Position numbers and translations under genes: made by a program. The notes beneath the pieces are model-generated. The model searched no databases. It was not told the DNA's origin and worked only from the letters and a program-made list of their open reading frames with translations. From Obrimoposthia wandeli (Eukaryota): a DNA stretch of 64,000 bases. The stretch lies in contig CDROCS010000410.1 in the NCBI GenBank assembly GCA_977020255.1, forward strand, positions 248,001-312,000, given 5' to 3'. Positions 1,994 through 54,894 of this stretch are shown here, piece by piece; the stretch's first letter is position 1; the number at the start of each line of letters is the position of its first letter.

Positions 1994-2085
1994 TTAACAC
2001 CCTGTATCATTAAGTTATATTTCATCTTATTACTTATGAGTGAGGATTATTCATCAATCCTCTTCACAAGTCCTCTTCATAAATC

Positions 2086-2955: not shown

Positions 2956-3246
2956 TGTTTTGTGTCATTTTAGAAATAATATGTCGATTCTATACGAAGA
3001 CAGCGAACAAAAGTAGCTGATTTTTAATAACTGAAGTAGCAGTAATGTATCAAATAATGCATAAAACAGAGCCCTTAATTAAAAGGTGACGTATTAGGGA
3101 GGTAAACACAAAACTTAGTAAAATAGCGCATGTGATTTTCCAACGATATTTAGCTAACCATTATCGTGACTACCACTTATAAGTGAGTAGGGACTAACTT
3201 ACGCCACGACTATTAAGATTTTAGGCACTAATTCGTGTATAGTACC

Positions 3247-3312
3247 GCGAAGTGACTATTTCCAATGTGAATAGTAACGTGCAGAGTCAATAAATAGGGC
3301 CTGCCATTACGC
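3247..3312 (+). promoter_or_regulatory. Candidate structured 5' leader (three-way junction) upstream of the SSS transporter
   Basis: Hand-folded: GCGAAGTG/CATTACGC encloses ACTATT/AATAGT and GCAG..CTGC stems; matches no riboswitch consensus I recognise. Confidence 0.3.
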
Positions 3313-3365
3313 TTATCCAGCACATTAAAATAATAATCACCATTACCCCCCCCTCAAGGAGATCT

Positions 3366-4997: not shown

Positions 4998-5031
4998 GTA
5001 TCATTTGATCATTAACAGCTAGGAGCACAAT

Positions 5032-5154
5032 ATGATGTTATCCCTTTATATTTTAGTATGGCCAGTCATTTCAGCGGCAGTATTATTTGTAATAGTAAGA
5101 GCGTTTTTTAAAGACATGGCAGATGCCAAGCGCGAAGAGCGTGATATCGTTTAA
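5032..5154 (+). CDS. 40-aa single-TM putative transporter small subunit (absent from ORF track): MMLSLYILVWPVISAAVLFVIVRAFFKDMADAKREERDIV
   Basis: AGGAG SD at 5021-5025; YILVWP motif, TM helix and charged tail typical of small proteins downstream of this SSS subfamily; followed by a terminator. Confidence 0.85.
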   Translation: MMLSLYILVWPVISAAVLFVIVRAFFKDMADAKREERDIV

Positions 5155-5176
5155 TTGAACGGTTTTCGCAGGTAAA

Positions 5177-5210
5177 TAAAAAGGGTCTAAATTTCTTTAG
5201 ACCCTTTTTA
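5177..5210. terminator. Bidirectional rho-independent terminator
   Basis: TAAAAAGGGTCTAAA-TTTC-TTTAGACCCTTTTTA, perfect 15-bp inverted repeat between convergent genes. Confidence 0.9.
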
Positions 5211-5315
5211 GCAATAACTTAGATACAATTCAATATTCAATACAGCTGCAATACTATGTCGTACGTTAGCTCACAAAAGGTTGGCGTAACTAAGCTATCT
5301 TTTCATTGAGACGGT

Positions 5316-5564
5316 TTATTTATAAAACGCTTCAACTTTACCTTTCATTGTCATCATTAGCGGTTGACCACGACGATCTAATGCTTTGTGTGACGGTACT
5401 TTTACCCAACCTTCACTGATGCAATATTCTTCAACATCGAAGCGCTCTTTGCCGTTAAGCATAATACCAATGTCAAACTGGAAAACAGCTTCATCATGAT
5501 GAGGGCTGCGAGGGTTGCCTGAAAGGTGATCTGGTAAAGCTGGTTTCGATGTAGTGTCGTTCAT
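5316..5564 (-). CDS. DUF3297 family protein
   Basis: NPRSPH, VEEYCISEGWV, G.PL...MKGKVEAF signature. Confidence 0.85.
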   Translation of the reverse strand: MNDTTSKPALPDHLSGNPRSPHHDEAVFQFDIGIMLNGKERFDVEEYCISEGWVKVPSHKALDRRGQPLMMTMKGKVEAFYK

Positions 5565-5784
5565 GTTCGTGACCTGTAATAATAAAAGTGCGTCATTGTA
5601 GTCAATATAGGCCTAACGCTCAAGAGCTAGGGTAATAAATGTTAACCCTTGGCATCCTAAATGCGTAAATGTTTATAAAAGTATCAACTGTGACGATTTT
5701 CGCTGAAACTTTTTATTCCCATACAACAAATGACTAAAGCATTTAATCACAATGCATTAAGTTAATTGCTGATTACCAGAATCA

Positions 5785-6132
5785 TCAGCGAATAAACTCG
5801 GTAACGTGCCAAAGCTCTCCTGATGGTCCCCACAAGTAGATGACTTTACCCCAACCTTCTATTTTAATGGGTTCATATTTTATGCCCAAATGCTCCAGTG
5901 TAGATATAACCTCAAATGCTTCGTTAATATCTAACACTGAGAGTTGGAACATGAGATTACTCGCTAGCTCTTCGTTATAAAATCGTTGAAGAAAAAATGT
6001 ACACCCACCGTTTTGAAATAATGATAAGTCATCAGAGACAAAATCCATTTCAAACCCTAGCGCTTGATAAAAGGACTTAGATATTTCGTAATTCTTGCTC
6101 GGGATAAAAACCCTGATATCATCAACTTTCAC
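5785..6132 (-). CDS. VOC (glyoxalase/bleomycin-resistance) family protein
   Basis: IRVFIPSKNYEISKSFYQALGF ... WG...YLWGPSGELWHV; GTG start with AAAGGAG SD. Confidence 0.85.
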   Translation of the reverse strand: MKVDDIRVFIPSKNYEISKSFYQALGFEMDFVSDDLSLFQNGGCTFFLQRFYNEELASNLMFQLSVLDINEAFEVISTLEHLGIKYEPIKIEGWGKVIYLWGPSGELWHVTEFIR

Positions 6133-40971: not shown

Positions 40972-41021
40972 TCAACTCATATAGAATGAGTTGATTAGTG
41001 ATTAAAACCATAAAAAATATC

Positions 41022-41056
41022 AAGCCTTAACGTGATCAACTACGTTAAGGCTTTTT
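41022..41056 (+). terminator. Rho-independent terminator of nrdAB-yfaE
   Basis: AAGCCTTAACGT-N8-ACGTTAAGGCTT-TTT; a second hairpin ATCAACTCAT/ATGAGTTGAT lies at 40971-40995. Confidence 0.85.
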
Positions 41057-41248
41057 CATATCGTGACCCAACGTTGATTTTTTCTCTTCATATAATGTAA
41101 CTCTCAATAGCTTACAAGATTGACTGTGATTTACTTTGCAAAACCACTAAACCTTACCCATACTCCTTTCAATAAGCTATAAGCACTTATATAGCGTATC
41201 AGAACTTCCACAACCTATATGTACCACACCTTAAAATAGGACAACTTT

Positions 41249-42091
41249 ATGTTAGATGATTTAGTTGGGATAGGAATGCGTCCAGCACATTATGAACAGC
41301 TGACCAAAAAACACGTCGATATTGGCTGGCTCGAAGTCCACAGTGAAAATCACTTCGAGATTAATTCTGAAGCGACTTATTATTTAGATAAAGCCAGTGA
41401 ACGCTATCCAATCAGTTTACACGGTGTCGGCTTAGCGCTCTCTTCTAACGAATTACTCGATCCATTGCATGTACATAATACAAAAAAACTTATCGACCGC
41501 TACAAACCATTCTCAGTGTCAGAACATTTAGGTTGGAGTTCCATCGCCGGACAACATTACAGTGATATGTCGCCGATAGCCTACACTGAAGAAAACTTAA
41601 AACATGTAATAGCCCGTGTTGATCAAGTTCAACACATTTTAGGCCAAGCTATCGCGATCGAAAACCCAGCTTGTTATAGTAAACATAAAAATAATACGTT
41701 AACAGAATCTGCTTTTTTAATTGAATTACAAGCCGCGACTAACTGTAAAATATTACTTGATATCAATAATGTACATATCAGTAGTCATCAGCTCGATTTC
41801 AACCCTTACGATTACTTAGCATCGATACCAAGCCATATTGTTAGCGAGATGCACCTTTCAGGTAGTAATAAACTATTACAAAATAATCGCATTACCTTTG
41901 ACCAAGAGCACGGCCAAAAAGTAACACCGGAAGTATGGCAACTGTTTGAATATTACTTGCAGCATTGCAACACGATCCCAACCTTAATTGAATGGGATAC
42001 CAACATACCAAGGCTCAGCGAACTTTTGCGTGAAGCATATACGGCCCAAAAAATGATTGTCAAATCTCAGCGTTTTAAAAACGCCTGCTAA
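41249..42091 (+). CDS. DUF692 / MNIO (MbnB/TglH/ChrH/BufB-family) multinuclear non-heme iron enzyme
   Basis: GIGMR..HY, WLEVHSEN, SLHG.GL, SEHL, IENP, LLDINN, EMHLSG, D..HG, LIEWD. Confidence 0.92.
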   Translation: MLDDLVGIGMRPAHYEQLTKKHVDIGWLEVHSENHFEINSEATYYLDKASERYPISLHGVGLALSSNELLDPLHVHNTKKLIDRYKPFSVSEHLGWSSIAGQHYSDMSPIAYTEENLKHVIARVDQVQHILGQAIAIENPACYSKHKNNTLTESAFLIELQAATNCKILLDINNVHISSHQLDFNPYDYLASIPSHIVSEMHLSGSNKLLQNNRITFDQEHGQKVTPEVWQLFEYYLQHCNTIPTLIEWDTNIPRLSELLREAYTAQKMIVKSQRFKNAC

Positions 42092-42131
42092 TCTGTTCGT
42101 TAAGTGCATCCTTACTCTACTTAATTGGGTG

Positions 42132-43364
42132 CTACATACTCTCTTCATGCCCGTAACAAACACCATGACATATTTGCGATAAGGCATGCTCTGCGCGGCC
42201 ATTACTGCTGAGTTGATGTGGGATACGTAAAATAACTTCCACAGAATTTTTATTACCCGCCAAAACTAAAAACAGCGCCGTGGTATTAAAATACGGCGGA
42301 ATAAAAAACACGCTCGTACAAGTGAAACCAGCAGCGCTATATTCATCCACGTTCAGGAAACCGAGATTAGAAATAATCCCAGAAGTACGGTACTGCCCTG
42401 TTTCTTGTCGTTTTAATGCCAGTTTGTCATTGAACTTTTTTAACCACGTTAGCGGTACCCAATTTAATACATTTAATGTCGGAATACCGGCAAACTGCGG
42501 CATTCTTGCATGCTCTAGATCCGCTATTTTAAGCTTGATTTGTTTAGTCCAATCAGCGGTTGTTGTGACGGGTGATACTTGCATCAATAATCCACCAGTC
42601 AAATTACCCGTAGAGACAATATCAGTATCATGCATGCGTAAATCAACTGGTAATTGGATCCGCACAGGCGAGTCAGAATAAAGATTGGCTAACTTAGCAA
42701 CACTGATACCTGCGTTGGCTAATACCTGCTTGTAACTACCAGGCAAAGTGCGGCGCTGCCAAGACGAACCAAAATCTTGCCCAAGTGGCACACCAGTCGG
42801 GGCTGCCACTGTATCGTTAACTTTATCTCCTGGTAGCGAGGTCACCGACTTAGCAAGATCAATATCACGTACAAAACTATTATCACCTTGCAATGTCAGT
42901 TGTCGTAATGCACGTAACACTTCATCAGCAAATGTTTTAGTTCCGCGTCCATCCATCACTGCATGGTGGGTTCTAAATATAATATGGTGTTTACCGTTTT
43001 CTTCTCCGAGTACCAATAAGACTTCACAACCAGTACTGGTTTTTACATCTAAAGGACGATTTAAGAATGGCGCAGCGTTATCACTCATACCATCCCAATT
43101 TAAGCCGCGGATAACTTCAAGCTGAGTTGTGATTCCAGCGTCAGACCAATGGCTAAAGCCAAGTTTACCTGATAGCCTAAATCGCGTGCCCTGCAAAGCC
43201 TCTGATGCTTTCGTAACAGCTTTTTGCCAGGCTGAGATATCAATATCACCTTCGCCTTCAAGTACCATCTGATTGACAACACAGGTCGCCGTTTCTTCGG
43301 CATTAAAATCATCACAACTAATATAAAAACGCTCTGTTGGTGAAAGTTTACGTTTAAACGTCAT
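42132..43364 (-). CDS. Stand-alone condensation-domain / CoA-dependent acyltransferase (likely start 43364, MTFKRKLSPTE)
   Basis: FRTHHAVMDGRG (HHxxxDG), PVDLR, GNLTG, ISNLG; AAGGAGG SD before 43364. Confidence 0.85.
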   Translation of the reverse strand: MTFKRKLSPTERFYISCDDFNAEETATCVVNQMVLEGEGDIDISAWQKAVTKASEALQGTRFRLSGKLGFSHWSDAGITTQLEVIRGLNWDGMSDNAAPFLNRPLDVKTSTGCEVLLVLGEENGKHHIIFRTHHAVMDGRGTKTFADEVLRALRQLTLQGDNSFVRDIDLAKSVTSLPGDKVNDTVAAPTGVPLGQDFGSSWQRRTLPGSYKQVLANAGISVAKLANLYSDSPVRIQLPVDLRMHDTDIVSTGNLTGGLLMQVSPVTTTADWTKQIKLKIADLEHARMPQFAGIPTLNVLNWVPLTWLKKFNDKLALKRQETGQYRTSGIISNLGFLNVDEYSAAGFTCTSVFFIPPYFNTTALFLVLAGNKNSVEVILRIPHQLSSNGRAEHALSQICHGVCYGHEESM

Positions 43365-43389
43365 CGTTCCTCCTTGAACTATAAGACGG

Positions 43390-46300
43390 TTATGCCGCGC
43401 TATCTGCAGCAGGATTATCAGGTAACTCGTTAATTTGACTATCACCCAACATTTGGTTGCTTCCCCTGGGTGTTTTAGACTGTAATCTGGATAGTAATAC
43501 GCCTAGAGCGAACACCATATCCTGAATCAATAAATACACAGCAGGTACTAACAGCAAGCTAACAAGTGTTGCGAATAGCACACCAAAGGCTAGAGATATA
43601 GCCATCGGAATCAAAAATTGGGCTTGTAAGCTAGTTTCACTCATGATTGGCACTAAACCAATAAATGTGGTTAATGACGTCAGAATAATGGGTCTGAATC
43701 GACGCACTCCGGCACTGGTGATCGCCGTTTCGAGTGACTCGCCTTGGCTGCGTTTTTCATTGATATAGTCAATCAAAACTAAATTGTCATTAACCACGAT
43801 ACCACTCACCGCAACCATACCAATAAAAGACCATAAGGTTACATCGACCCCAAGCAATAAATGCCCTAACAAAGAACCAACTAAGCCAAATGGGATAGCA
43901 AACATCACCAACAATGGTTGTGTGTAAGAGCTAAACAAAATCGCCATCACTAAATACATCGCGATTAACGCCAATAAATAACTACTGGTTAAAATATCAA
44001 TAAACTCAACAATGCTTTTCTGTTTACCAGCTTTCGACCACTTAACCGCCGTAGTATCGGTTAATTGCTGTAAAAAACCAGACTCCAGCTCAGCAATAAC
44101 AGCCTTAATACTATTTTTCCCCGGATCGACAAATGCAGAGACTGAAATAACGCGATTGCGTTCATAACGTTTAATATTATGATCTGCCGACTGATAACTC
44201 ACATCAGCGATAGTAAACAGTGGTACACCTTCGCCACTCGGTAATGAAATGTGCATATTCTCTAAATGCCACTGCGAGCTAGTGGCTGTTTTGGGATAGC
44301 TAACCTGCACTTTAACTTCATCTTCACCACGCGGCATACTCAGCACTTCAACACCTAAATAAGCCTGCTGAACCTGCTGCCCGAGTGCGCTTAGCGTCAG
44401 ACCCATATCACGGGCGACAGGTTTTAATGCCAACTGTACTTGCCTTGAACTACGCTGCTGCGAGTCTTGGATATCGTACACTCCTTCAAACCTTGCCATC
44501 ACTTGCTTTAACGCCTCAGCTTGTTGCGCTAAATCATCTAGGTCGCGACTCGATAATTCAATATTGATATCTGCGCTTGGCGGCGTAAGATCGGCAACAA
44601 AATTTAATTCAATACTATCTTCAATTTCACCGACGCGATCACGCCAGCGTCTAATAATGTCATTGCCAGACATAACGCGATCATTAGATACTGATAGTTC
44701 CAAATACACCCTGCCAATATGATCATCTGCAGCCGCTTGTGATTCGCGCGAATATTTACTTACCGGGGCAACAACAGAATAAACATGGGCAATAGCAGAA
44801 ATACCATTTTCATCAAGCAATTCTTGCTGTAACTGCAAGGCTTCATGTTCAATTTTTAATAATGCTAATTTAGTTTTTTGTGGGTTACTGCCCTCAGCAA
44901 ACGTCACATTGGCGTAGGCTATATCGCCTTCAATGGCCGAAAATAAAACAGTCCGTAGCCAACCACTAGAAAGCAAAGTCAAAGAGATAAAAAACAGCCC
45001 TAAAAATCCCAGTATATAACTCCAGCGCCAGCGTAATACATGATCGAGAAAAGGCTTATATTGGCGGATAACGAATGTCTCTAACGCAGCTGAAAATCGA
45101 CCTTGTATACTTTCTAATACCCCGCCAAGTATTTTAGCCTTACTCATAAACAGATTTTGGGTTACCACAGGTGACTTACCTGATTGAAATGGGGACTGAG
45201 GCTGGGATTGGGATTGAGGTTGAGAGTCATGACTTAAATGTGCAGGTAAGATGAATAACGATTCAAACAACGAAAACAACAGCGTGGTAATAACGACCAC
45301 GGGAATAACTTGCATCAATTTACCTTCAGGTCCAGGTAAAAACAGCAATGGCATAAAGGCAATAACACTGGTGATGATTGCAAAGGTGATCGGTTTAGCC
45401 ACTTTATAAGCGCCGTCAATCGCCCCTTCAACCCCTTTATTACCCGCTGCTTGCTCGGTGTAAATGCTTTCGCCGACGACAATCGCATCATCCACGACAA
45501 TACCCAGCACCAATAAAAAGGCAAACAGTGAAATAATATTAATCGAACCATCAAAAATCGGTAACAGCCAAAAAGCCCCCATGAATGAAACGGGGATGCC
45601 TAAACTGACCCAAAATGATAAACGCCAGTTTAAAAATAACAGTAAGATGACAAATAGCAGACATAATCCGCTAAACACATTACCAACCAATAAATCGATA
45701 CGACTCATGAACAATTTAGAATCATCTTGCCAAACGTACAAACTAATCCCTTCTGGCAGATAGGTTTTTGGCGTTCGCACATAGTTATTTATCGCATCAG
45801 CAACATCGATAATATTCTGGTCACCAACACGGAATACATCCAAAGATACCGCGCGTTGTCCATCAAGTTGTGCCATCGTACCTTCATCACGAAAGCCGTC
45901 GTTAATGGTCGCTATATCACTGAGTAAGATCCGCCCACCATCTTCATTCGCTTGCAGAATAATATTGGCAAAGTCATCCGCACTTTCAATTCGGCCTAAC
46001 GTTTGAATCAATATATCGCCCTGCTCTGTGGCTAAACTACCACCAGGTAAATCAAGCGCGGTGGCTTTTAATGTATTCACCACATCTTCAAACTTTAAAT
46101 TGTATTGTGCCAAACCGTCTTCAGATAAGGCGATGCTGATTTCGTAAGGTCTTGAATTTTGCAGTTCGATAACCGAAATAGCTGGTTCTTCTAATAGATC
46201 CAAGCGAATATTTTCAGCCAAACGCTTTAACGCCCACTCATCGCCAGCCCCTGAAATAATCAGTTTAGCGACGCGATATCGCTCAATCAATTCACTGACA

Positions 46301-46680
46301 ACCGGCTTAGTCACTTCATCAGGAAATGAGCTGATGCTTTCAATTCTTGATTTAACTTCATCTAACACTGCCTTGGTACTATAACCATCAGCAATATCAA
46401 TGGTGGTATAGCAAGAACCAGAACTGGCGAATGAGGTTAAATCCAGTGTCCCGGCAATATCATAAACGACGGCTTCAATGCGCGTGCAAACAACAGCTTC
46501 AACTTCTCGAGGTGCCGCACCCGGATACAATGTCGAGATCGCAATACGCTCTAATGACACACCAGGAATTAACTCTTTACGCGTTTCGGGTAAGGCTAAG
46601 CAACCAAGGGCAATAATCACCATCATGATCAAATTTGCTGCCACTCGATTATGGGCAAACCAAGTAATTAATACCTTCAT
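43390..46680 (-). CDS. RND efflux permease (AcrB/AcrD/AcrF family)
   Basis: N.VAANL.M, GIVVDDAIVVGE, VSGIVVND.LV, RRFRPIILTSLTT..GL.P; ATGA overlap with the upstream gene. Confidence 0.95.
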   Translation of the reverse strand: MKVLITWFAHNRVAANLIMMVIIALGCLALPETRKELIPGVSLERIAISTLYPGAAPREVEAVVCTRIEAVVYDIAGTLDLTSFASSGSCYTTIDIADGYSTKAVLDEVKSRIESISSFPDEVTKPVVSELIERYRVAKLIISGAGDEWALKRLAENIRLDLLEEPAISVIELQNSRPYEISIALSEDGLAQYNLKFEDVVNTLKATALDLPGGSLATEQGDILIQTLGRIESADDFANIILQANEDGGRILLSDIATINDGFRDEGTMAQLDGQRAVSLDVFRVGDQNIIDVADAINNYVRTPKTYLPEGISLYVWQDDSKLFMSRIDLLVGNVFSGLCLLFVILLLFLNWRLSFWVSLGIPVSFMGAFWLLPIFDGSINIISLFAFLLVLGIVVDDAIVVGESIYTEQAAGNKGVEGAIDGAYKVAKPITFAIITSVIAFMPLLFLPGPEGKLMQVIPVVVITTLLFSLFESLFILPAHLSHDSQPQSQSQPQSPFQSGKSPVVTQNLFMSKAKILGGVLESIQGRFSAALETFVIRQYKPFLDHVLRWRWSYILGFLGLFFISLTLLSSGWLRTVLFSAIEGDIAYANVTFAEGSNPQKTKLALLKIEHEALQLQQELLDENGISAIAHVYSVVAPVSKYSRESQAAADDHIGRVYLELSVSNDRVMSGNDIIRRWRDRVGEIEDSIELNFVADLTPPSADINIELSSRDLDDLAQQAEALKQVMARFEGVYDIQDSQQRSSRQVQLALKPVARDMGLTLSALGQQVQQAYLGVEVLSMPRGEDEVKVQVSYPKTATSSQWHLENMHISLPSGEGVPLFTIADVSYQSADHNIKRYERNRVISVSAFVDPGKNSIKAVIAELESGFLQQLTDTTAVKWSKAGKQKSIVEFIDILTSSYLLALIAMYLVMAILFSSYTQPLLVMFAIPFGLVGSLLGHLLLGVDVTLWSFIGMVAVSGIVVNDNLVLIDYINEKRSQGESLETAITSAGVRRFRPIILTSLTTFIGLVPIMSETSLQAQFLIPMAISLAFGVLFATLVSLLLVPAVYLLIQDMVFALGVLLSRLQSKTPRGSNQMLGDSQINELPDNPAADSAA

Positions 46681-49007
46681 GAGCGCACCACGTTCAACTT
46701 CATGCCATTTACCGCAACGTCAAGCGGGGTTAATATCAGTTTATCGCCAGCTTTTAAGCCACCAGTAATATACACTTGATCTTTACCTTGATGAAGGACG
46801 TCAACGAGGACAATGCTAAGTCGTTGGTCGGCGCCCAACAGCCATACTTTATTATCATTTCGCAATGCTAAACGCGGAATAATCACCACGTTGTCAAACT
46901 CACGACCAGCGATTTCGGCAGTAACAAATCGCCCAGGTTGTAAATACAAGGGTTGTTCCGGATCGTTTAATACCTCAGCAACCACATATTGTAATCGATT
47001 CTCAGCTAAGCCTCCTTCAGTCCCCGTAATAGTCCCTTGCCATTGAAAACGTGCATTATTAACACTCACCGAGAGGGTAACGCGAGGTTTTTTGATTGCA
47101 GGTTCAGCCGCTACCGTATTTTTATCATGCGTAAATGCTGAGACTTTAAAGGGCAGATCCATCAAGGTTAAATATTTATCAGCAACAGGCAGTCGCACAT
47201 GCATTGTATCTAACGCGTATATTTCGCCAATGATTTCGCCTGAGTTAACTAATTGACCTCGGCCAACATCAGCCGTTTTAACACGACCTGAAAACGGCGC
47301 TTTAATAACGGTACGTTCTAATTTTATATTGGCTAAACGTAAGTCAGCTTTAGCCGCCTTAACCCGGCTTTTCGCATCATTAATTTGCGGAATGTGGCGA
47401 GCAAAATTAGTTGCCTTGCTAGAGACTCCACGTCGAGCCACATGGGCTTTTGCTTTAGCCTCAGCTAAGTGCAGTAACGCACCATCTACGGCCTGCTGCT
47501 TTTTAATCACTTCAAGTTGGTATGCTTCATCGTCCATCGATAACAACACATCGCCAGCATTAAAATAGCCACCAGCAGTAAAGCTATCAGCAACAGATTT
47601 AACGTTTGCAGTCACTTCAGAATTAAGGCTAATTTGCGTTTTAGCGGCGACGATACCACGGCTGAAAATAGGGATTATCGCGTTATCAAAAGCCACATCC
47701 ATATAGCGAACGGATGGGAAACGATTAACTTCTGGATTGATTTGGCTCTGTGGTCGAATGACAGATAACAGGGTCATACAAATCACAGTAAATGCCATAA
47801 TCGAAAGTGGGATTGATACTTTTTTATGGCGAATAAATAATAACTGCCCTTGTCGCCAATATGGTAATAACGTGTCTTTAGCTTGCAGTACACCTTTTTC
47901 TATTTTAGGTAATAGATACTGCTTTAACTTGCTGGGTTTACGCTGCTTTTTTGACTTAGTTTTTAATTTAGCCTCTAGCTTAACAACTGCAATTTCTTCT
48001 GGAACCAGTAAGTCACCTTGTAACAAATGCTGTTTCCAACACTGCATTACGGCTTCCGTTATAATGATATCGTCGGCTATATACGGGTGTAATTTCAACC
48101 CCAAAGACAGCTGTTCATGCCACAGTAAAATACCTGTCGAAACTGGATAGTTTTTAGTACCAATGCCACAACAAACCCACATGTCATCTTGGTTCATTGG
48201 TGGATTATTATCATCCTGAAGTGGCCAATTGCCTAAAAAGCTAAATGAACCAGCATAAAATTGGCGCTCACTGACATATTGGTAAATACGACGTACGCCA
48301 TTCTCACCAATAATTTTACCTATATGAGCCTGCCACCAAAGCTGCCAATGACTTTTGGATTTGATCTGTTGCTTCACTTGCAACTGGATATCGCGCGGTG
48401 CAATAGTATTGTTAAGTATGACATTGATACCAGAGGAGCAATTACCCGTTTCAGGGACATTGGGTAACGCCCCACGTAAGTTAACCGGATATAGCCAGTA
48501 GTAGTCTTGTTGGGATGCAAGAAGTTGCTCGGCGACAGCTCTGTTTAACGCCCAGAATAGATAAATATTCAGTGCGACTCTGTGCTTTTTAGCTAATTTT
48601 TTAACCTCGAGTGTTTCAGCTTTACTGAAGTACGTATTAACAATGGGGGCGTCATTACTGTATTGAGTCGTGTTATTGATTGCCGCATGATCGGGGAACG
48701 TAGCTTTCCAACGAATGGTTTTAGCCACATTAGACTTGCCACCAGCAAACAGCATTTTAACTTGCTGCCAATGAGACGGTGCAGTTTTGTCTGCGCTTTT
48801 AGGTAAGTTCACACAAGGGTAATCATGCTCACGCAAGATAGTGGTTAGCCCACCTAATCCATCCATTTGACTGTGCGAAAATTCAAACCAATTAATGTCA
48901 TCCGTGGTTTTATTTAGCAAGCCAACATTCATTCGGTCACCGATCCCAAACGCTTTACGTGCCTGAAACCACATTGCTATATAATCTTTATTCTGGCTAC
49001 TACTCAT
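46677..49007 (-). CDS. Fusion: N-terminal HxxxDG acyltransferase/condensation-like domain (about 330 aa), Lys-rich linker, TM anchor and RND periplasmic adaptor (MFP)
   Basis: FSHSQMDGLGG, PVNLRG, GNCSS, SFLG.W; then KVSIPLSIMAFTVICMTLL TM, G.V..V...F..GG.F..GD.L, RT.IKAPF.GRV, PGRFV.AEI.G. Confidence 0.88.
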   Translation of the reverse strand: MSSSQNKDYIAMWFQARKAFGIGDRMNVGLLNKTTDDINWFEFSHSQMDGLGGLTTILREHDYPCVNLPKSADKTAPSHWQQVKMLFAGGKSNVAKTIRWKATFPDHAAINNTTQYSNDAPIVNTYFSKAETLEVKKLAKKHRVALNIYLFWALNRAVAEQLLASQQDYYWLYPVNLRGALPNVPETGNCSSGINVILNNTIAPRDIQLQVKQQIKSKSHWQLWWQAHIGKIIGENGVRRIYQYVSERQFYAGSFSFLGNWPLQDDNNPPMNQDDMWVCCGIGTKNYPVSTGILLWHEQLSLGLKLHPYIADDIIITEAVMQCWKQHLLQGDLLVPEEIAVVKLEAKLKTKSKKQRKPSKLKQYLLPKIEKGVLQAKDTLLPYWRQGQLLFIRHKKVSIPLSIMAFTVICMTLLSVIRPQSQINPEVNRFPSVRYMDVAFDNAIIPIFSRGIVAAKTQISLNSEVTANVKSVADSFTAGGYFNAGDVLLSMDDEAYQLEVIKKQQAVDGALLHLAEAKAKAHVARRGVSSKATNFARHIPQINDAKSRVKAAKADLRLANIKLERTVIKAPFSGRVKTADVGRGQLVNSGEIIGEIYALDTMHVRLPVADKYLTLMDLPFKVSAFTHDKNTVAAEPAIKKPRVTLSVSVNNARFQWQGTITGTEGGLAENRLQYVVAEVLNDPEQPLYLQPGRFVTAEIAGREFDNVVIIPRLALRNDNKVWLLGADQRLSIVLVDVLHQGKDQVYITGGLKAGDKLILTPLDVAVNGMKLNVVRS

Positions 49008-49120
49008 CGGTTAGCTTCCTTGTTAACCAAACTGAATGCCTCGAAAAAATCGAAACTTTAAAATTTAAACCTTTAGCTTTAACCTTTAGCCTTTAACCTC
49101 GTCCTTTACAACCTAGCCCT

Positions 49121-50278
49121 TTACAACCTGGCAGGTTCTAAATACAAGGGATATGTTTTGTCAAAATTAGCGCGTGGATCATCGTGATAACTAGCAATGA
49201 AATGTTTGCTATGCAGTACTTTAGAACGATATTGTTCGAGAATATGCTGACGGGTATCTATCGAGGGTAATCCGCATACTAACGCCTGATAGTTTTGCGC
49301 TAAACAATCATTATAAATATGCTCTAATAACCGTGAAAATAACTTTTCATCATCATTAATGACTAACAAGCTATGCAGCGACACATAACTGAGTTTATCT
49401 CCGGATTTCGGTAGCATCATGCCGCCGAACAATGTCGAGTAAGCATTATTAAGTAAGCGCACCACAGCCATCAATTTACTGTAAGCGACAAAACGCGTTT
49501 GTTTAAAGCTGCTTTGATCCCAAATACCAGCCATTGCGACAAGTTGGTTACCTTCGAACATCAAGTAATAATTACTGATGACGAGTCCTCGGTAATACTC
49601 ATCGCCATTTAATAATTTAATAAAATCATAATGCGGATAAAACTGTTTAGTCTTAGCTTGCTGCTCAAAGAAGACTTGCATCAATTCAATATCATTATGA
49701 TCCGCTTTACGGATGTTAAACTTACTTTCTTGATTTGAATGTGGCAAAGAACGAGGCCTACTTATAAGAGATTTAGCTATACGAGGCCTAGTTATACGAG
49801 GTCTAGTTAAATACAACATATGCGTTGTCATCTCACCAAAATCATAATACGTAGGCGTGATACTACGTCCGCTGCCGATTGAATTTAAAGAAGCATTGTT
49901 ATCACTCAGGATCACGGTCTGCATCCAATCACGACCCATCGCTTGGCGATAACATTTCAAAAGATTAAAGAGAGTCCGACCACTTTTGAAGTCAGGGTGG
50001 ATCCGTAAGTCATTACCATAACGTACTTGCTGACGCTCACCATTCACATAAACATCACGATGACCAATACTAAAGATTGCGGCAACACGTTCGCTTTCAC
50101 GCTCAATCGCAACCCAAACATCCGGTATCTGAGTCACTACTTTCGTGGCCATAAAAAAATCAGGCATGCGTTCAAAATTGATTGTAATTGCCCCGGCCTG
50201 AGGGGTTGCTGCAATTAATGCGATCAATTCATCAGAATCATTTGTTTGTGCTGGCCTTGTATAGAATCGGCTTGCCAT
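49121..50278 (-). CDS. Tandem GNAT-fold acyltransferase-like protein (NMT/FemAB-like architecture)
   Basis: R.A...D...L, YGNDLRIHPDFKSG, second GNAT-like half (IRKA...D, L.AMAGIWDQ..FKQ). Confidence 0.7.
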   Translation of the reverse strand: MASRFYTRPAQTNDSDELIALIAATPQAGAITINFERMPDFFMATKVVTQIPDVWVAIERESERVAAIFSIGHRDVYVNGERQQVRYGNDLRIHPDFKSGRTLFNLLKCYRQAMGRDWMQTVILSDNNASLNSIGSGRSITPTYYDFGEMTTHMLYLTRPRITRPRIAKSLISRPRSLPHSNQESKFNIRKADHNDIELMQVFFEQQAKTKQFYPHYDFIKLLNGDEYYRGLVISNYYLMFEGNQLVAMAGIWDQSSFKQTRFVAYSKLMAVVRLLNNAYSTLFGGMMLPKSGDKLSYVSLHSLLVINDDEKLFSRLLEHIYNDCLAQNYQALVCGLPSIDTRQHILEQYRSKVLHSKHFIASYHDDPRANFDKTYPLYLEPARL

Positions 50279-50352
50279 TGGTATTACCTCGACGACTTAA
50301 TGAAGCTTTATACGTTATTGTGATTACTGCCTATTTACTGCAACCTAACTGC

Positions 50353-52005
50353 CTATGCGGCAATCGCTTGAAGAAAGATATCCGGCATATCAACATCCCA
50401 AAGTACTAAAGGCTCAATTTTTATATTACCAACAACCATGCCGCGCGCTTCACAACGTGAATAATACAAATCACGCGCGTTCTGACTACAACATACTTTT
50501 AACGCATCCAGCTGACCAAGATCTCTTGCTAATTGGTAATGGAAGCAAGCCTGCAATTCAGCTTCGGCATTGGCAGCAACCTGCTGCATTTCCAGTTCGC
50601 TAATATGGCTATTCGGTTCACACAGTAAAAGATAAAATGGTTTTTCATGCGAGCTATTAGCCGGTACAGCAAAAACCGTGATAGCTGTTAATCGTGAGTC
50701 TTCCTCGGCGGTTTTCATCACTTCAAGCGCGATCTCTGGACTCATTTTTTCACCAACAAGATCAATACCATCCAAGCGACCTAAAAATTCAAAACAAGGA
50801 CAATCTTGCAGGAAACCACTGACACGTAATTTATCTTTCATCGCATATCGCAGTAAGCCACTGCCTGTAGTTAATACCGGTCTTACAAGCTGATCTTGTT
50901 TGAGTTTCCAAGCGGGTAATACCGCGTCAGTCTCAAGGTCAATAAATTCATAAAAATGACTGCATATGGCTAATGGATATTGCCCTTGGAAAGGAATAGT
51001 GACAACTCCCTCAGTAGCCCATAATCCCTTGCCTTGAAACTCCCCTTGTGGCAGTAAATCTTTCAATTTATTCGCCCACGTAGTAGATGACGATGTATCC
51101 CATGCGCTAACCAGCACCAATCGAGGCCAAATTTGTTGTAACAACTCAGCAGAAATACCGCCCTTCCATTGCAATAGCAACTCAGCAACACGTTGTGATT
51201 TAGGGCATTTCAATCCAGGTAATGCCGCAGCACGCTTACCCCACTTGCCTGTCGCCAATACCGATACCAGCTCTAATTTATGTTTAATAATATTATCAAA
51301 TAAGGTCAGTGCAAAAGTAGGACTCCACACCGACAGGAAACTTAACGACTTATCCGCCAGTAAATAACATAACGTGGCAAATTGAGAGTCTTCTGATGTA
51401 TCAGCTAAAGACACACCTTCAGGTACCGAACTGGTCACCCCCATAAATATCCTTTTCCACCAAGGCAGTAACTTCAAGTCGTCATTCACCGCACCAGATA
51501 TCGTCCGTCTTAATTCTGTCGGCACCCAAGACAATGACCAATAGTGCGTCCCTTTAAGCATGCCTGGATTATCTTTATACATATCCACCATCCAAGGCGA
51601 AATTGCAGCATCAAGTTCATTTAAAAATGACTGCGTATAAGGGATCCATTTTATTTTAGAGGTTGAGCCACTTGTCGGCTGAAATCGTTCATTCTCTTCA
51701 ATACTCAACTCTTGACTACTACCCGACCTGGCTTTTTCTATTTGTATTGCCCAATCGTCATATTCAGTGATAGGTACCTTACGAATAAACTCTTCATAAA
51801 ATAGCGAAGTCGATAGATTATATTTCTTACCTGATACACTTGGCGCGATCACTTTAAGCAATGAACTTAATTTTTCACGTTGCACTGCTTGCGGGTGCGC
51901 CAAGGCTTTACAAAATTGTTTGTATCCATACAAGCTCAATTTATTTGCTGCTTGATGAGTGAATTTATGTGCGAGCTTACGGGTGATGCTATTGATTAAC
52001 GCCAT
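50353..52005 (-). CDS. GH3 family acyl-acid amido synthetase
   Basis: VPITEYDD, FQPTSGST...KWIPYT, KGLWATEG..TIP, HFYEF, L.TGSGL.RY.M.D, F.GR......GEK. Confidence 0.9.
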   Translation of the reverse strand: MALINSITRKLAHKFTHQAANKLSLYGYKQFCKALAHPQAVQREKLSSLLKVIAPSVSGKKYNLSTSLFYEEFIRKVPITEYDDWAIQIEKARSGSSQELSIEENERFQPTSGSTSKIKWIPYTQSFLNELDAAISPWMVDMYKDNPGMLKGTHYWSLSWVPTELRRTISGAVNDDLKLLPWWKRIFMGVTSSVPEGVSLADTSEDSQFATLCYLLADKSLSFLSVWSPTFALTLFDNIIKHKLELVSVLATGKWGKRAAALPGLKCPKSQRVAELLLQWKGGISAELLQQIWPRLVLVSAWDTSSSTTWANKLKDLLPQGEFQGKGLWATEGVVTIPFQGQYPLAICSHFYEFIDLETDAVLPAWKLKQDQLVRPVLTTGSGLLRYAMKDKLRVSGFLQDCPCFEFLGRLDGIDLVGEKMSPEIALEVMKTAEEDSRLTAITVFAVPANSSHEKPFYLLLCEPNSHISELEMQQVAANAEAELQACFHYQLARDLGQLDALKVCCSQNARDLYYSRCEARGMVVGNIKIEPLVLWDVDMPDIFLQAIAA

Positions 52006-52014
52006 GCCATCCCC

Positions 52015-52806
52015 CTACTTAACTAAACGACGAGTTAAACTAATAAGTCCTAAATCCCAATTGATATTGTTTTTTTGCAATGTCTTGCTTAGTGATTTTC
52101 GTGCAAAATAGCTAAACATTGAGGCGTTAATTTGACCAATACAAGGTAGTTCCTTACCCTCACGCCAATTCGGATTACGGTCTTCAAAGAATCCAATTTT
52201 AGGTACAGTTCGTTTCAACTCTGAGGTTATCTCAGCCACTTCTCCACGTAGCTTTTGGTAATCGCCACCAAAATCTAAGATTTGCTGCTGCGCGTCGAAA
52301 TAACTTGGATACAGGTGTTCGCAATATTGATCGACAACTGATGATAATTCATCAAACTTGCCTTGGTGATGTGGATAATGTTTTGGGAAGTTATTGGCGA
52401 GTAATAAGTAAGTTTTATAACCTTTGGAAATAAGTAGCCAAAATAACGGCGTGAGTGGATCGCGTAGTTTTTCCTTTAATAACACTTTAACAAAACAGAT
52501 CATCGCCTTATTGGTTCCCCAATACTGGCGCTCTAAAATAGTATCACCACTAAAGATACCTTTAACCTCTCTGCCTTTCAGGTTGAAGCGTAACGTTTTT
52601 AACGTACTAAAACCGACAATGCGCTTTGATTTACTTTCGCGGATCAAAATCAAACCGTCTTTTTCAGACAAATCATCTATGAATGTTGAAAAATCCGCAT
52701 TGTGATAGTACTGAATAAAGAGCGTATGCATTTCCTTTACCTGCTGGATAGAAATGCGATCTAATGTAATGTAATCTGCTGATATCTTCTGTTTTGTCGT
52801 TTCCAT
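52015..52806 (-). CDS. GNAT-like protein of the GH3-associated family (likely start 52806, METTKQ)
   Basis: F..DL.EK, RIVGFST, FSGDTI....YWG, WLLISKGYKTY..L.N.F..HYP. Confidence 0.7.
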   Translation of the reverse strand: METTKQKISADYITLDRISIQQVKEMHTLFIQYYHNADFSTFIDDLSEKDGLILIRESKSKRIVGFSTLKTLRFNLKGREVKGIFSGDTILERQYWGTNKAMICFVKVLLKEKLRDPLTPLFWLLISKGYKTYLLLANNFPKHYPHHQGKFDELSSVVDQYCEHLYPSYFDAQQQILDFGGDYQKLRGEVAEITSELKRTVPKIGFFEDRNPNWREGKELPCIGQINASMFSYFARKSLSKTLQKNNINWDLGLISLTRRLVK

Positions 52807-53137
52807 TTGTGACCCAATCCTTGGCAAATGTGTAGGTGTAAGAATAAAAGTAAATGTACCCTCATTCAATCTCAAGCCATCCTTAGCTTGCTGTCTTTTA
52901 GATCATCCGGTGTGAAGGATTAAATCTGAAAGTAAAATGAATGTATCACTAAAATATGCTCGCTTGAAGACAATCAAAATACCTTAAAGAAGCATGATAA
53001 CCGGACATAGATTAGCGATAAAAGCTAGATTGACGAGTGGGAACAGTTCAAATTTAATCAAAGTCCCCATTAAACAGATAAATATGCCATAACTCTTATT
53101 TTACAAACTTCAGCTACGACAATTATATCTGTCTAGA

Positions 53138-53153
53138 AGTGACCGTTGTCACA
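53138..53153. promoter_or_regulatory. CRP-like site upstream of the GH3 operon
   Basis: AGTGA-CCGTTG-TCACA, one mismatch to TGTGA-N6-TCACA. Confidence 0.5.
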
Positions 53154-53341
53154 GGAAAATATGCATCGCTATAGAATAAAGGATCTAATTATTAATAAGT
53201 TAGCACTAGTATTAATTGGTACTTTTTAAATAGTAATCACAATGAGTTAACACGTAATGATGATTAGGAATGAGTCTTAACCATGACTCACATAGTCAAA
53301 TAAATGTAACCAAGGCTAGCAGCTAAAATTAATTCAGATAA

Positions 53342-53644
53342 TTAATGTTCATATTGGCAATTCCAACAAATATCAAATGAAGCATCATTTTGTTCGCTGC
53401 ACTGCTGACAAAGCCAATCAGGATCATCTGCTCTACTCTGCATTGCCGAAATAATCTCAAGCGCGCGTTCAAATTCATTATCATTAATAACCCAAAGTTC
53501 CATCCAAGCATCAAATGCAGATACTTCCCCTACTGCTCCAGATGAAAATTCGTTTTTAAGCACCACGTCAATGCTATGTGATTCGATGATATTTTTAACA
53601 TTGTTTACTAAAAAACCATTCTCATGGGTATAAATTAATTTCAT
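53342..53644 (-). CDS. DUF2007 family protein with C-terminal RanBP2-type Zn finger (likely start 53644)
   Basis: N.....I...LKNE, W.ELWV, W.CQQC.E.N..SF.ICWNC; GGAG SD. Confidence 0.85.
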   Translation of the reverse strand: MKLIYTHENGFLVNNVKNIIESHSIDVVLKNEFSSGAVGEVSAFDAWMELWVINDNEFERALEIISAMQSRADDPDWLCQQCSEQNDASFDICWNCQYEH

Positions 53645-53679
53645 CTGATTTACTCCATCTAGATCCAAGATATGATGCG

Positions 53680-53886
53680 TTAATCTTTATCGCGAGGTGC
53701 ACCTTCATCGCATTTTTTACAGCCAAGTTCAAAACCTAACATAGATTCACGACCTTCAATGGTAATAACCCAAGGGCGACAAAACCAAGGCGGATTGTGA
53801 CGTACATGCTGAAAATGATCGCAGGCGAGTTCAGCGACCCAATCATCCTCTTCATCTTTATGGTAACCAACAATTGGCTGCTGCAT
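53680..53886 (-). CDS. DUF3565 family protein (likely start 53886)
   Basis: IVGYH.DEE.DWVAELAC.H.QHVRH.PPW..RPWV....GR...LG..L.CKKCD. Confidence 0.88.
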   Translation of the reverse strand: MQQPIVGYHKDEEDDWVAELACDHFQHVRHNPPWFCRPWVITIEGRESMLGFELGCKKCDEGAPRDKD

Positions 53887-54150
53887 TATGTTCTCCAACA
53901 AAAGTTTCCAATAAAAGCCTTCAATAAAACCAGTAATAAAAGCTGTAATAGCACTAGCTATAATACCTTCATCGAATTTACACTAAATCACATCATAAAC
54001 GATATAGAATAATTGAGTAATGGTTATATTCTCAGTACAATATAGCCCTATTCGAAAATGTTAAGTAATTACCCATAACAGCGCATTAATGCCAACTTTC
54101 ATGCGTAAATACCACGAGTTCGTATCAATTTACACGATTAGGAATACATA

Positions 54151-54894
54151 ATGCTCGTCGAAACATTACTGCCCTTCATGGCCATTATTGCAGTTGCTAC
54201 CTATGTGCAAAGTGTCGCAGGCTTTGCTTTAGGCATGATAGTCATGGGCACAGTAACCACCTTTAATTTAGTGCCCATCGCGTTCACTTCAGTGGTGATC
54301 AGTTTTGTGACCTTGATTAATAGCATCTTTATTTTGAAAGGCTGTATGCAACAACTCAATAGACGCTTAGTGCTATTGACCGTTGCAGGGATGCTACCCG
54401 GTTTAATGATTGGCTTAACATTGCTTGAATACTTGAGCAGCGAATACAGCCAAATATTACAAAACATCCTTGGCATCGCGATTATTGGTGCTGGCATTAG
54501 CATGATTTTAAAATCACCACACAAAGATCGTAAACAATCTCATGAAGGCATGTTCCTTGGCGCGGGTACTGCGTCGGGCATTTTAACCGGACTGTTTAGT
54601 ATGGGCGGACCGCCACTGGTTTATATCTTCTATCGCCAACCTTTTACCCTTAATCTTATTCGTTTATATCTGCTAAGCATTTTCTTTGTTAGCTCAATAA
54701 GCCGTATCACTATGGTGGGTATTCAGGGAGGACTAACGAGTGACATGTTACTGTTCTCCGTTATTTGTATTCCCGTCGTATTGGGTATGAGTTGGGTTGC
54801 TAAACATTATCCACCACCGATTAGCCTAGATACCATGCGTAAATTCGCATTTTGTCTATTAATGATTATCGGTAGCAGCTTACTGTTTAGCTAA
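54151..54894 (+). CDS. Sulfite exporter TauE/SafE (TSUP) family membrane protein
   Basis: VQ.VAGFA.G, G..GGPP.V; about 8 TMs. Confidence 0.88.
   Translation: MLVETLLPFMAIIAVATYVQSVAGFALGMIVMGTVTTFNLVPIAFTSVVISFVTLINSIFILKGCMQQLNRRLVLLTVAGMLPGLMIGLTLLEYLSSEYSQILQNILGIAIIGAGISMILKSPHKDRKQSHEGMFLGAGTASGILTGLFSMGGPPLVYIFYRQPFTLNLIRLYLLSIFFVSSISRITMVGIQGGLTSDMLLFSVICIPVVLGMSWVAKHYPPPISLDTMRKFAFCLLMIIGSSLLFS

Follow-up and report, generated by a model that had tools for sequence, protein, structure and literature searches.

What does a bacterial operon make when it encodes a GH3-family amide-forming enzyme, several acyltransferase-like proteins and an efflux pump, and does that pump export the product? 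The question is raised by a six-gene operon (g1 to g6; Table 1) at positions 42132-52806 of a 64,000-nucleotide stretch of DNA, hereafter the window (positions 248,001 to 312,000 of contig CDROCS010000410.1, assembly GCA_977020255.1, Obrimoposthia wandeli). The closest proteins to the products of the operon are Moritella proteins, and the closest loci are those of M. dasanensis, Moritella sp. JT01 and Moritella metagenome-assembled genomes (MAGs); we accordingly assign the DNA to a Moritella species. We hold with moderate confidence that the operon makes an amphiphilic lipo-amide of the N-acyl amino acid or aminolipid type without a dedicated carrier protein, and hands it to its own resistance-nodulation-division (RND) pump. 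Overall, we judge it to be a real and widespread variant of the GH3-dependent route to aminolipids or lipo-amides, coupled to export, with one bacterial precedent for its chemistry.

The listing of open reading frames (ORFs) and direct reading agreed exactly with the first-pass annotation of this DNA, which had described six co-oriented genes: all lie on the minus strand and are spaced, from g1 to g6, by 9, 74, 113, -4 and 25 nt. The five acyl- or amide-transfer modules of three folds that it had counted were likewise recovered, by Pfam for the GH3 enzyme, by structure models for g1 and the N-terminal domain of g4, and by homology to that domain for g6; g3 appears to be GNAT-related by its language-model neighbours and by weak Pfam matches in a few relatives. 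The fusion of a condensation-type (C) domain to a membrane-fusion protein (MFP), as read in g4, is real: 17 Moritella-type proteins carry it, with lengths of 598-862 aa, one of them annotated as partial. As the annotation had also stated, no adenylation (A, AMP-binding) domain, acyl or peptidyl carrier protein (ACP/PCP, PP-binding), ketosynthase (KS) or TolC was found in the block by Pfam and NCBIfam, flanking genes included, and the same searches of the six proteins and flanking genes found no thioesterase. The block therefore lacks the A domain and PCP of a nonribosomal peptide synthetase (NRPS) assembly line, and its gaps are too small to hide a carrier-protein gene. The remark that bacterial GH3s are mostly uncharacterised holds true beyond a single case, OlsH, which is now a precedent and makes the chemistry less new than had been supposed (PMC12493201).

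By its sequence, g2 is a member of the GH3 acyl acid amido synthetase family (PF03321/PF23571/PF23572). It scored 140.4 bits for GH3, 56.9 bits for GH3_M and 28.1 bits for GH3_C, against a cut-off of 23.6 for each, and a family profile of 19 diverse relatives matched the structures of plant GH3.15, GH3.5, GH3.12 and JAR1 with E values down to 4e-17. The nucleotide-motif residues T111-S112-G113-S114...K119, T331-E332-G333 and R386-Y387...D391 were invariant in the 19 diverse members, and the first and third of these stretches align with the corresponding regions of AtGH3.15. By analogy, it is most likely that g2 adenylates a carboxylic acid and then forms an amide with an amine. The plant GH3s (JAR1, GH3.5, GH3.12/PBS3, GH3.15) have the Pfam domains and the three nucleotide motifs in common with g2. 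However, the similarity is low, being found at the profile level only, and the plant proteins act as single enzymes on hormones, whereas g2 sits in an operon with transferases and a pump.

The bacterial precedent is OlsH (Sinac_1599; UniProt L0DAW6), a GH3-like enzyme of Singulisphaera acidiphila that converts a free fatty acid and ornithine, with ATP and Mg2+, to N-acyl ornithine without coenzyme A (CoA) or ACP; the alpha/beta-hydrolase OlsI O-acylates N-acyl ornithine to ornithine lipid (PMC12493201). In living E. coli, OlsH showed no activity (PMC12493201). The likeness to our operon lies in a bacterial GH3 as the maker of the amide bond and in an acyltransferase encoded in the same operon (PMC12493201). 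We liken the two by chemistry and gene content, and by this analogy class the operon as one that would work like the OlsH system, not as a member of it. The S. acidiphila ols operon also encodes a head-group modifying enzyme, the methyltransferase OlsG (PMC12493201), and the folds of the partners differ, with the alpha/beta-hydrolase OlsI and the methyltransferase OlsG on one side and GNAT-fold and condensation-superfamily proteins on the other; no OlsI-type alpha/beta-hydrolase was found in the block or at those syntenic loci that were examined. No transporter is associated with OlsHI, whereas the Moritella operon has an RND pump, and OlsH is hosted by planctomycetes and the FCB group, whereas the hosts of the present operon are gamma-, beta- and deltaproteobacteria. 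New relative to OlsH are thus a larger and different set of partner enzymes, other hosts and an exporter that is coupled covalently or genetically to a biosynthetic enzyme. The authors of the OlsH study expect other N-acyl amino acids from other bacterial GH3 homologues, the functions of which they left open (PMC12493201). GNAT, C-family or RND partners of GH3, and the hosts found here, are mentioned neither in that paper nor in a 2026 review (PMC12493201, PMC12971839), and literature searches that combined GH3 with the host genera, RND and gene clusters returned mostly papers on plants or on the glycoside hydrolases also called GH3, and no description of the operon architecture or of its pump coupling.

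The gene arrangement is conserved far beyond Moritella. A scan of one genome per species of bacteria and archaea gave 595 pattern-matching stretches, 547 of which were confirmed as GH3 relatives. We counted neighbours by tblastn and ORF clustering within 10-kb flanks of the best 80 of the 547 stretches, which are the closest to the Moritella GH3, so that the frequencies are biased to Moritella relatives; denominators are the loci with enough flank. The g1 gene was directly upstream of the GH3 gene at 72 of 77 loci and g3 directly downstream at 66 of 76, while an MFP and an orthologous RND gene were found near GH3 at 35 of 63 loci, a C-like gene of the type of the g4 N-terminal domain at 26 of 63, and g6 at 16 of 52 fully flanked loci. 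The order g1-GH3-g3-C-MFP-RND-C was colinear in Moritella, two Hahellaceae, six Oleispira, Bermanella and an uncultured gammaproteobacterium; the block without g6 was found in Thalassolituus, Alcanivoracaceae, Saccharospirillaceae and Cellvibrionales. A lack of synteny among homologues elsewhere, which the first-pass annotation had named as grounds to reject its reading, is contradicted by the adjacency of g1 and GH3 and by the colinear block in several genera; synteny across so many genera means that the arrangement is not a matter of chance. The syntenic RND orthologues are 38-60% identical to g5, and RND identity tracks GH3 identity to Moritella (Spearman 0.73, 34 loci), a value that is descriptive only and is inflated by relatedness. 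Aquabacterium and other Burkholderiales carry g1-GH3-g3 and a convergent C-like gene without a pump; the high-GC Aquabacterium loci were judged by tblastn only, simple ORF calls having given spurious opposite-strand ORFs without Pfam matches.

Variants of the neighbourhood are informative about the product. In Desulfobacteraceae, two genes for PaaK-like ligases come next after g1-GH3, and then those for an LPG_synthase_TM protein, an MFP and an RND permease. In Thermodesulfobacteriota (L022) and Desulfosudaceae, the order is MMPL-g1-GH3-g3-C-like and then DUF1302, with LolA_like before DUF1302 in L022, and one gammaproteobacterium has an MMPL gene after g3. This repeated swap of one exporter of hydrophobic molecules for another points to a product of amphiphilic or lipid nature that is moved out of the inner membrane, and we consider it the strongest contextual argument. 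A CoA-transferase gene follows the pump in Alcanivoracaceae, and the other accessory genes encode a family-28 glycosyltransferase, a GDSL lipase, a radical-SAM enzyme, a thiamine pyrophosphate (TPP) enzyme and PaaK-like ligases; the CoA-transferase, PaaK-like ligases, GDSL lipase and glycosyltransferase are in keeping with lipid and acyl-thioester chemistry. An AraC-type regulator is placed divergently in several lineages.

Two lineage-specific genes were also observed in these neighbourhoods. Four Oleispira loci (L012:12495-14135; L017-L019) have a TPP-dependent enzyme (TPP_enzyme_N/M/C) directly downstream of g6 on the same strand, which may supply or modify the acid substrate. In Desulfobacteraceae (L007:7122-8933; L009, L016, L020), a protein of about 600 aa without a Pfam match, 65-83% identical among these loci, is encoded immediately upstream of g1 and is probably a further lineage-specific component.

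The pump is encoded by the C-terminal part of g4 and by g5. Residues 456-773 of g4 matched TIGR01730 (RND_mfp) with 125.5 bits (cut-off 94.9) as well as Pfam HlyD_3, and this MFP part shares 33-45% identity with the MFPs encoded separately at syntenic loci. The Kyte-Doolittle plot of g4 has a sole hydrophobic window, at about residues 396-419, and the positive flank on its N-terminal side indicates that the N-terminus is cytoplasmic. Since a linker and a single helix separate it from the periplasmic adaptor, the enzyme domain must be cytoplasmic and tied to the adaptor's anchor in the inner membrane. The g5 protein matched ACR_tran with 494 bits over residues 6-1052 and has the 'VVDDAIVV' motif in transmembrane (TM) helix 4; its start overlaps the stop of g4 by 4 nt. 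Compared with the named multidrug pumps of NCBIfam (AcrB, MexB, MdtBC, OqxB and others), g5 fell far below every equivalog cut-off, and its best NCBIfam score was 415 bits against a subfamily cut-off of 1250. Of a tripartite RND system, the permease and the adaptor are present and the outer-membrane factor is not. We also observed a Gln/Ser/Pro-rich low-complexity insertion (SQPQSQSQPQSP...) at about residues 495-525 of g5, in the central cytoplasmic loop.

Gene fusions tie the C-like enzyme to membrane export. At non-Moritella loci, the C-like protein is a separate soluble protein whose gene abuts or overlaps that of the MFP; it stands just upstream of the MFP gene at 26 such loci, and it is also unfused in a divergent Moritella MAG (L004). 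An exhaustive search of the C-like domain family revealed further fusions. In P0200 (1371 aa), the C-like domain is at the C-terminus of an AcrB-type permease, within an operon of the form AraC / g1-GH3-g3-MFP-RND::C whose g1, GH3 and g3 products are 42, 44 and 29% identical to the Moritella proteins. The C-like domain follows an LPG_synthase_TM (MprF-type) membrane domain in P0192, a GDSL lipase in P0227 and an SDR domain in P0238. Both termini of RND permeases are cytoplasmic, as known for AcrB, and so is the N-terminus of the MFP; both independent pump fusions therefore place the C-like enzyme at the cytoplasmic face. Export coupling is thus supported beyond adjacency, by the fusions to pump and flippase-like proteins and by the alternative lipid-export sets. 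The unfused MFPs of Exilibacterium (L008:13964-15703) and Pleionea (L013:13946-15592) start with a basic cytoplasmic tail of 110-150 aa ahead of the TM helix. These tails resemble the lysine-rich linker of Moritella and may be docking sites for the separate C-like protein.

Profiles of the g1, g3, g4 N-domain and g6 families matched nothing significant among the PDB sequences (for g3, there was no match), so that g1 and the g4 N-domain were resolved by structure prediction alone. For the N-terminus of g4, Pfam PapA_C appeared below threshold only. The AlphaFold2 model of this domain (predicted local distance difference test, pLDDT, 91.3) adopts a two-lobed condensation/CAT-type fold, which Foldseek matched with probability 1.0 to C, E and Cy domains of NRPSs, to PapA5 and to TRI3. 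VIA-align gave Z scores of 24.6 for AzeD (8s6l), 20.0 for TRI3, 17.5 for WS/DGAT and 16.7 for PapA5, with a range of 16-25 for the condensation superfamily, and the nearest reviewed fold neighbours are mainly lipid acyltransferases, including the lipid O-acyltransferases WS/DGAT, PapA5 and MAC2. All 47 sequences compared have H45 and D49, and 44 of them have G50; where the canonical HHxxxDG begins with His, most members of the family carry Ser or Pro. The family comprises 459 clusters in a library of 1.8 billion proteins, mostly stand-alone proteins of 320-340 aa. On the strength of its model, we assign the g4 N-domain to the condensation/CAT-fold superfamily; acyl transfer is its predicted reaction, which is likely but not certain. 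The g6 protein matched Pfam Condensation below threshold (E 6.4e-4). Its family retains H135, D139 and G142 in 19 of 19 sequences and H134 in 16 of 19, hhalign aligned it with the g4 N-domain family (probability 97.8%, E 1e-12), and its Atlas neighbours carry Condensation, PapA_C, WS_DGAT_C or AATase. These sequence comparisons assign g6 to the same superfamily.

The two remaining proteins, g1 and g3, had no match in Pfam or NCBIfam, and GNAT models matched none of 30 members of the g1 family. An AlphaFold2 model of g1 built on 30 relatives (pLDDT 90.7) nevertheless shows the GNAT fold, into which about 70 aa are inserted, and matched NatD, GCN5, AAC(2') and other GNATs with Z scores of 11-12.5 over residues 5-235 (about 150 residues aligned). 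Judged by this modelled fold, g1 is a GNAT superfamily member. Whole-length fold matches to OlsB, NodA and N-myristoyltransferases (NMT) were weaker. The Atlas (language-model) neighbours of g3 scored 0.94-0.98, are 345-379 aa long and carry Acetyltransf_1/9/7 in 10-100% of cluster members; weak Pfam GNAT matches occurred in 3 of 28 family members (E 1.6e-4 or weaker), and hhalign of the g3 family against the g1 family was borderline. From its size alone, about twice that of one GNAT domain, g3 may be a tandem GNAT arrangement. GNAT-fold N-acyltransferases that make N-acyl amino acids or acyloxyacyl aminolipids are known (OlsB/OlsA, OlsF, GlsB/GlsA and FeeM-type synthases), and the likeness of g1 to these consists in its weak whole-length matches to OlsB and NodA. 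Unlike OlsB and FeeM-type synthases, g1 has no Pfam Acetyltransf_5/FeeM match, and, unlike OlsA-type systems, the operon has no PlsC-type O-acyltransferase. Amide formation would presumably be driven by ATP through GH3, in contrast to the acyl-ACP-driven reaction of OlsB-type systems.

From the folds, motifs, topology, operon structure, synteny and fusions that we observed, we infer substrates, a step order, acyl donors and export as follows. The free carboxylic acid adenylated by GH3 would most likely be a fatty or hydroxy fatty acid, which the enzyme would then join in an amide to an amino acid or amine, as OlsH does. The g1 and g3 proteins would add or modify acyl groups on amines, modify the head group, or prepare the amine substrate, with acyl-CoA or acyl-ACP from general metabolism as donors. 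For the last tailoring, by the pump-tethered C-like domain of g4, a 'piggyback' O-acylation analogous to the reactions of OlsI and OlsA is most likely and a dehydration less so; g6, present in some lineages only, would add a further acyl group. Via an unlinked outer-membrane channel, the MFP-RND pump would carry the product from the inner membrane to its destination, which may be the outer membrane, the cell surface or the medium. Equally possible is the alternative order, in which g1 acts first to give an N-acyl amino acid, to whose free carboxylate GH3 adds a second amine.

For the coupling of enzyme and transporter, the nearest analogy is offered by the mycobacterial pairs PapA5-MmpL7, for phthiocerol dimycocerosate (PDIM), and PapA1/2-MmpL8, for sulfolipid, in which an HHxxxDG acyltransferase finishes the lipid and a co-encoded RND-superfamily transporter exports it. 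Synthesis and export are thought to be physically coupled in these systems. However, they need polyketide synthases and carrier proteins, have neither GH3 nor GNAT, and place MmpL in a mycolate envelope, whereas in Moritella a covalent fusion fixes the coupling, and the transporter is a Gram-negative MFP-RND pump. Another partial likeness is the legionellol cluster (lpg2225-2234) of Legionella pneumophila, which has a GH3 gene and an efflux pump and makes an acylated ornithine-derived surfactant (PMC5640695). That cluster differs in being built on KS, ACP and ligase genes and in having a pump of the major facilitator superfamily (MFS) (PMC5640695).

Several observations weigh against a lipo-amide that is made by GH3 and exported by the operon's own pump. 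In a 2016 study, inactivation of the GH3 gene of the legionellol cluster had no effect (PMC5640695); a GH3 gene in a lipid cluster is thus not always essential. Most hosts found here belong to orders that are missing from the list in the review cited above, which used an identity threshold of at least 30% (PMC12971839); a GH3 clade distinct from that of OlsH, possibly with different substrates, is suggested. No TolC/OprM-type outer-membrane factor was found in the block or the adjacent genes examined, although an unlinked TolC may serve the pump. No exporter lies within 10 kb of g1-GH3-g3 at Aquabacterium-type loci, and the neighbourhood frequencies carry the bias towards Moritella relatives already described. 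Finally, the best structural match of the pump-fused C-like domain, with 306 residues aligned, is to a dehydratase in which the first His of HHxxxDG is also unconserved. This protein, AzeD of Pseudomonas aeruginosa (PDB 8s6l), is a stand-alone C-family enzyme that acts on a free substrate (bioRxiv 10.64898/2026.07.17.738954). It shows both that stand-alone C-family proteins need no carrier protein and that acyl transfer is not the sole chemistry possible for the g4 N-domain. We think it unlikely, though worth serious attention, that this domain is itself a dehydratase or another non-acylating C-family enzyme. Such a role would accord with the top rank of AzeD, since the acyltransferases reach a Z score of at most 20, and with the first His, which is Ser or Pro in most g4 N-domain relatives and Pro in AzeD (bioRxiv 10.64898/2026.07.17.738954). 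However, AzeD is just 12% identical to the domain, has 433 aa against about 330 aa, and sits in an NRPS alkaloid cluster without a link to a transporter, whereas the g4 N-domain is fused to an MFP. The acyltransferases WS/DGAT, PapA5 and TRI3 match too, at Z scores of 17-20, lipid acyltransferases predominate among the reviewed fold neighbours, the catalytic His, Asp and Gly are kept, and the family is homologous to that of g6 with its canonical HHxxxDG. Acyl transfer is the role that we prefer for the domain.

Readings of the whole operon other than lipo-amide synthesis with export turn on the nature of the product and on the link to the pump. The product could instead be a non-lipid, namely a polar or aromatic acyl-amino acid of small size that serves, for example, as signal, siderophore-like compound or antibiotic; GH3 would make it with GNAT and C-family tailoring, and the pump would secrete it. 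Plant GH3s do mostly use aromatic or small acids, AzeD tailors a small non-lipid alkaloid (bioRxiv 10.64898/2026.07.17.738954), and the variable accessory genes (radical SAM, TPP enzyme, SDR fusion) resemble the diversification of secondary-metabolite clusters. This seems improbable to us all the same, as the only characterised bacterial GH3 takes fatty acids (PMC12493201), the neighbouring exporters are of lipid-handling types, and a GDSL lipase and a CoA-transferase are among the partners. Siderophore-type hydroxylase, receptor and uptake genes were not found in the block or its flanks; a likeness to NRPS-independent siderophore (NIS) synthesis was accordingly rejected, and survives only within this improbable reading. 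The lipid-trafficking character of the alternative partners LolA_like, DUF1302 and the MprF-type TM domain, which points to the outer membrane, also speaks against a role in detoxification, in which toxic exogenous acids or amines, for example oil-derived ones, would be conjugated or acylated and expelled by the RND pump, as plant GH3s act on hormones and herbicides. Many hosts degrade hydrocarbons (Oleispira, Thalassolituus, Alcanivoracaceae, Bermanella, Desulfobacteraceae), the divergent AraC-type regulator of several lineages would suit such a role, expulsion of xenobiotics is classical for RND pumps, and auxinic herbicides are conjugated by plant GH3s (PMC12493201). However, four to five co-inherited transferase-like enzymes and a pump-fused enzyme are more typical of a defined multi-step product, and Moritella and Aquabacterium are not specialised oil degraders, so that we give detoxification somewhat less credence still. 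The pump might, at last, be merely adjacent: g1-g3 would make an intracellular or inner-membrane product, and the C-terminal part of g4 with g5 would be a general efflux pump co-transcribed by chance. Aquabacterium-type loci do carry the enzymes without any pump, and the genes for g6 and the g4 N-domain are dispensable in many lineages. Against this stand the fusions that join the C-like domain, independently, to the MFP and to the RND permease inside syntenic operons, the MFP/RND start-stop overlap and tight spacing throughout, the co-variation of RND with GH3 identity, and the other exporter types that take over where the pump is missing, and we regard a chance association as very improbable.

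Table 1. Features of the operon and its upstream region, with positions in the window, strand, and basis or remark.
Feature	Position	Strand	Basis or remark
g1, GNAT-fold protein, 263 aa	52015..52806	-	ATG at 52806
g2, GH3-family adenylate-forming acyl acid amido synthetase, 550 aa	50353..52005	-	Pfam GH3 N, M, C
g3, GNAT-related protein, 385 aa	49121..50278	-	language-model neighbours, weak Pfam in relatives
g4, condensation-superfamily domain fused to RND MFP, 776 aa	46677..49007	-	AlphaFold2 model and TIGR01730
g4 N-terminal domain, residues 5-330	48018..48995	-	cytoplasmic, condensation/CAT superfamily by model, motif S-H45-x-x-x-D49-G50
g4 linker, residues 331-395, lysine-rich cytoplasmic tether	47823..48017	-	sequence reading
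g4 transmembrane anchor, about residues 396-419	47751..47822	-	Kyte-Doolittle
g4 C-terminal part, periplasmic RND membrane-fusion (adaptor) protein	46677..47750	-	TIGR01730, HlyD_3
g5, RND permease, AcrB/AcrD/AcrF family, 1096 aa	43390..46680	-	ACR_tran
g6, free-standing condensation/PapA5/WS-DGAT-like protein, 410 aa	42132..43364	-	canonical HHxxxDG
5' intergenic region above g1, about 535 nt	52807..53341	-	presumed promoter region

The length of g6 is counted from the ATG that agrees with the start of the family consensus. We place the operon promoter, by inference, in the intergenic region above g1, which holds no operon-strand ORF of at least 80 aa; sigma-70-like matches there were weak and not above the level of shuffled sequence, and promoter and terminator scans gave sites no more numerous than in shuffles. 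No riboswitch or leader that might name the metabolite was found, there being no Rfam match at E <=1 in 41000-54500. Upstream of the operon lies a DUF2007 ('putative signal transducing protein') gene (53342-53668, minus strand) with a C-terminal zinc-ribbon-like DUF7577, which is kept at this place only in some Moritella (L001, L035). In M. dasanensis (L001, about 1500-6000), a second pair of RND permease and MFP genes stands on the opposite strand a few kilobases upstream; it is not at that position in the window or in other Moritella, and the upstream flank therefore varies within the genus. On the other side, a DUF692/MbnB-TglH-ChrH gene (41249-42091, plus strand; Pfam E 1.4e-85) is convergent with g6. 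Its family comprises enzymes that modify precursors of ribosomally synthesised and post-translationally modified peptides (RiPPs). It stands alone directly after nrdA-nrdB-yfaE, preceded by a gap of 277 nt (40972-41248) that could house a small precursor ORF, and it adjoins the operon in other Moritella too (86-88% identity, L001-L003). Separately, we considered a link to the glycine-glucolipid of Alcanivorax borkumensis, whose pathway was still unknown in 2023 (PMC10710537), and dropped it as unsupported: A. borkumensis and A. dieselolei were not among 120 matches of at least 52% identity to the GH3 of Alcanivorax sp. 1008, their absence being unproven, and these relatives include Isoalcanivorax indicus, Alcanivorax sp. 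JB21 and MAGs.

Aminolipids of bacteria, ornithine lipids among them, are widespread and affect stress tolerance, antibiotic susceptibility and innate immune recognition. GH3 was tied to their synthesis only in 2025, in one planctomycete (PMC12493201), and the operon would be a second GH3 pathway of different architecture with a built-in candidate exporter, in which natural gene fusions indicate the proteins that should touch. It also bears on the delivery of aminolipids to the outer membrane, where ornithine lipids are enriched; the 2026 review names no exporter and leaves this delivery unaddressed (PMC12971839). Tentatively, and with more doubt than confidence, we propose that the operon is the first dedicated aminolipid or lipo-amide export machine of Gram-negatives, that a C-family tailoring enzyme, docked on or fused to the cytoplasmic face of the MFP-RND pump, makes one coupled event of the last biosynthetic step and of lipid extraction from the inner membrane, and that g1-GH3 represents a large family of carrier-free, ATP-driven lipid-amide synthases (547 stretches) with interchangeable exporters (RND/MFP, MMPL/LolA-like/DUF1302 or an MprF-type flippase domain). 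If true, coupled synthesis and export, as proposed for the PapA/MmpL lipids of mycobacteria, would have a counterpart in Gram-negatives, and the operon may point to new carrier-free biosurfactants of cold-adapted and oil-degrading marine bacteria.

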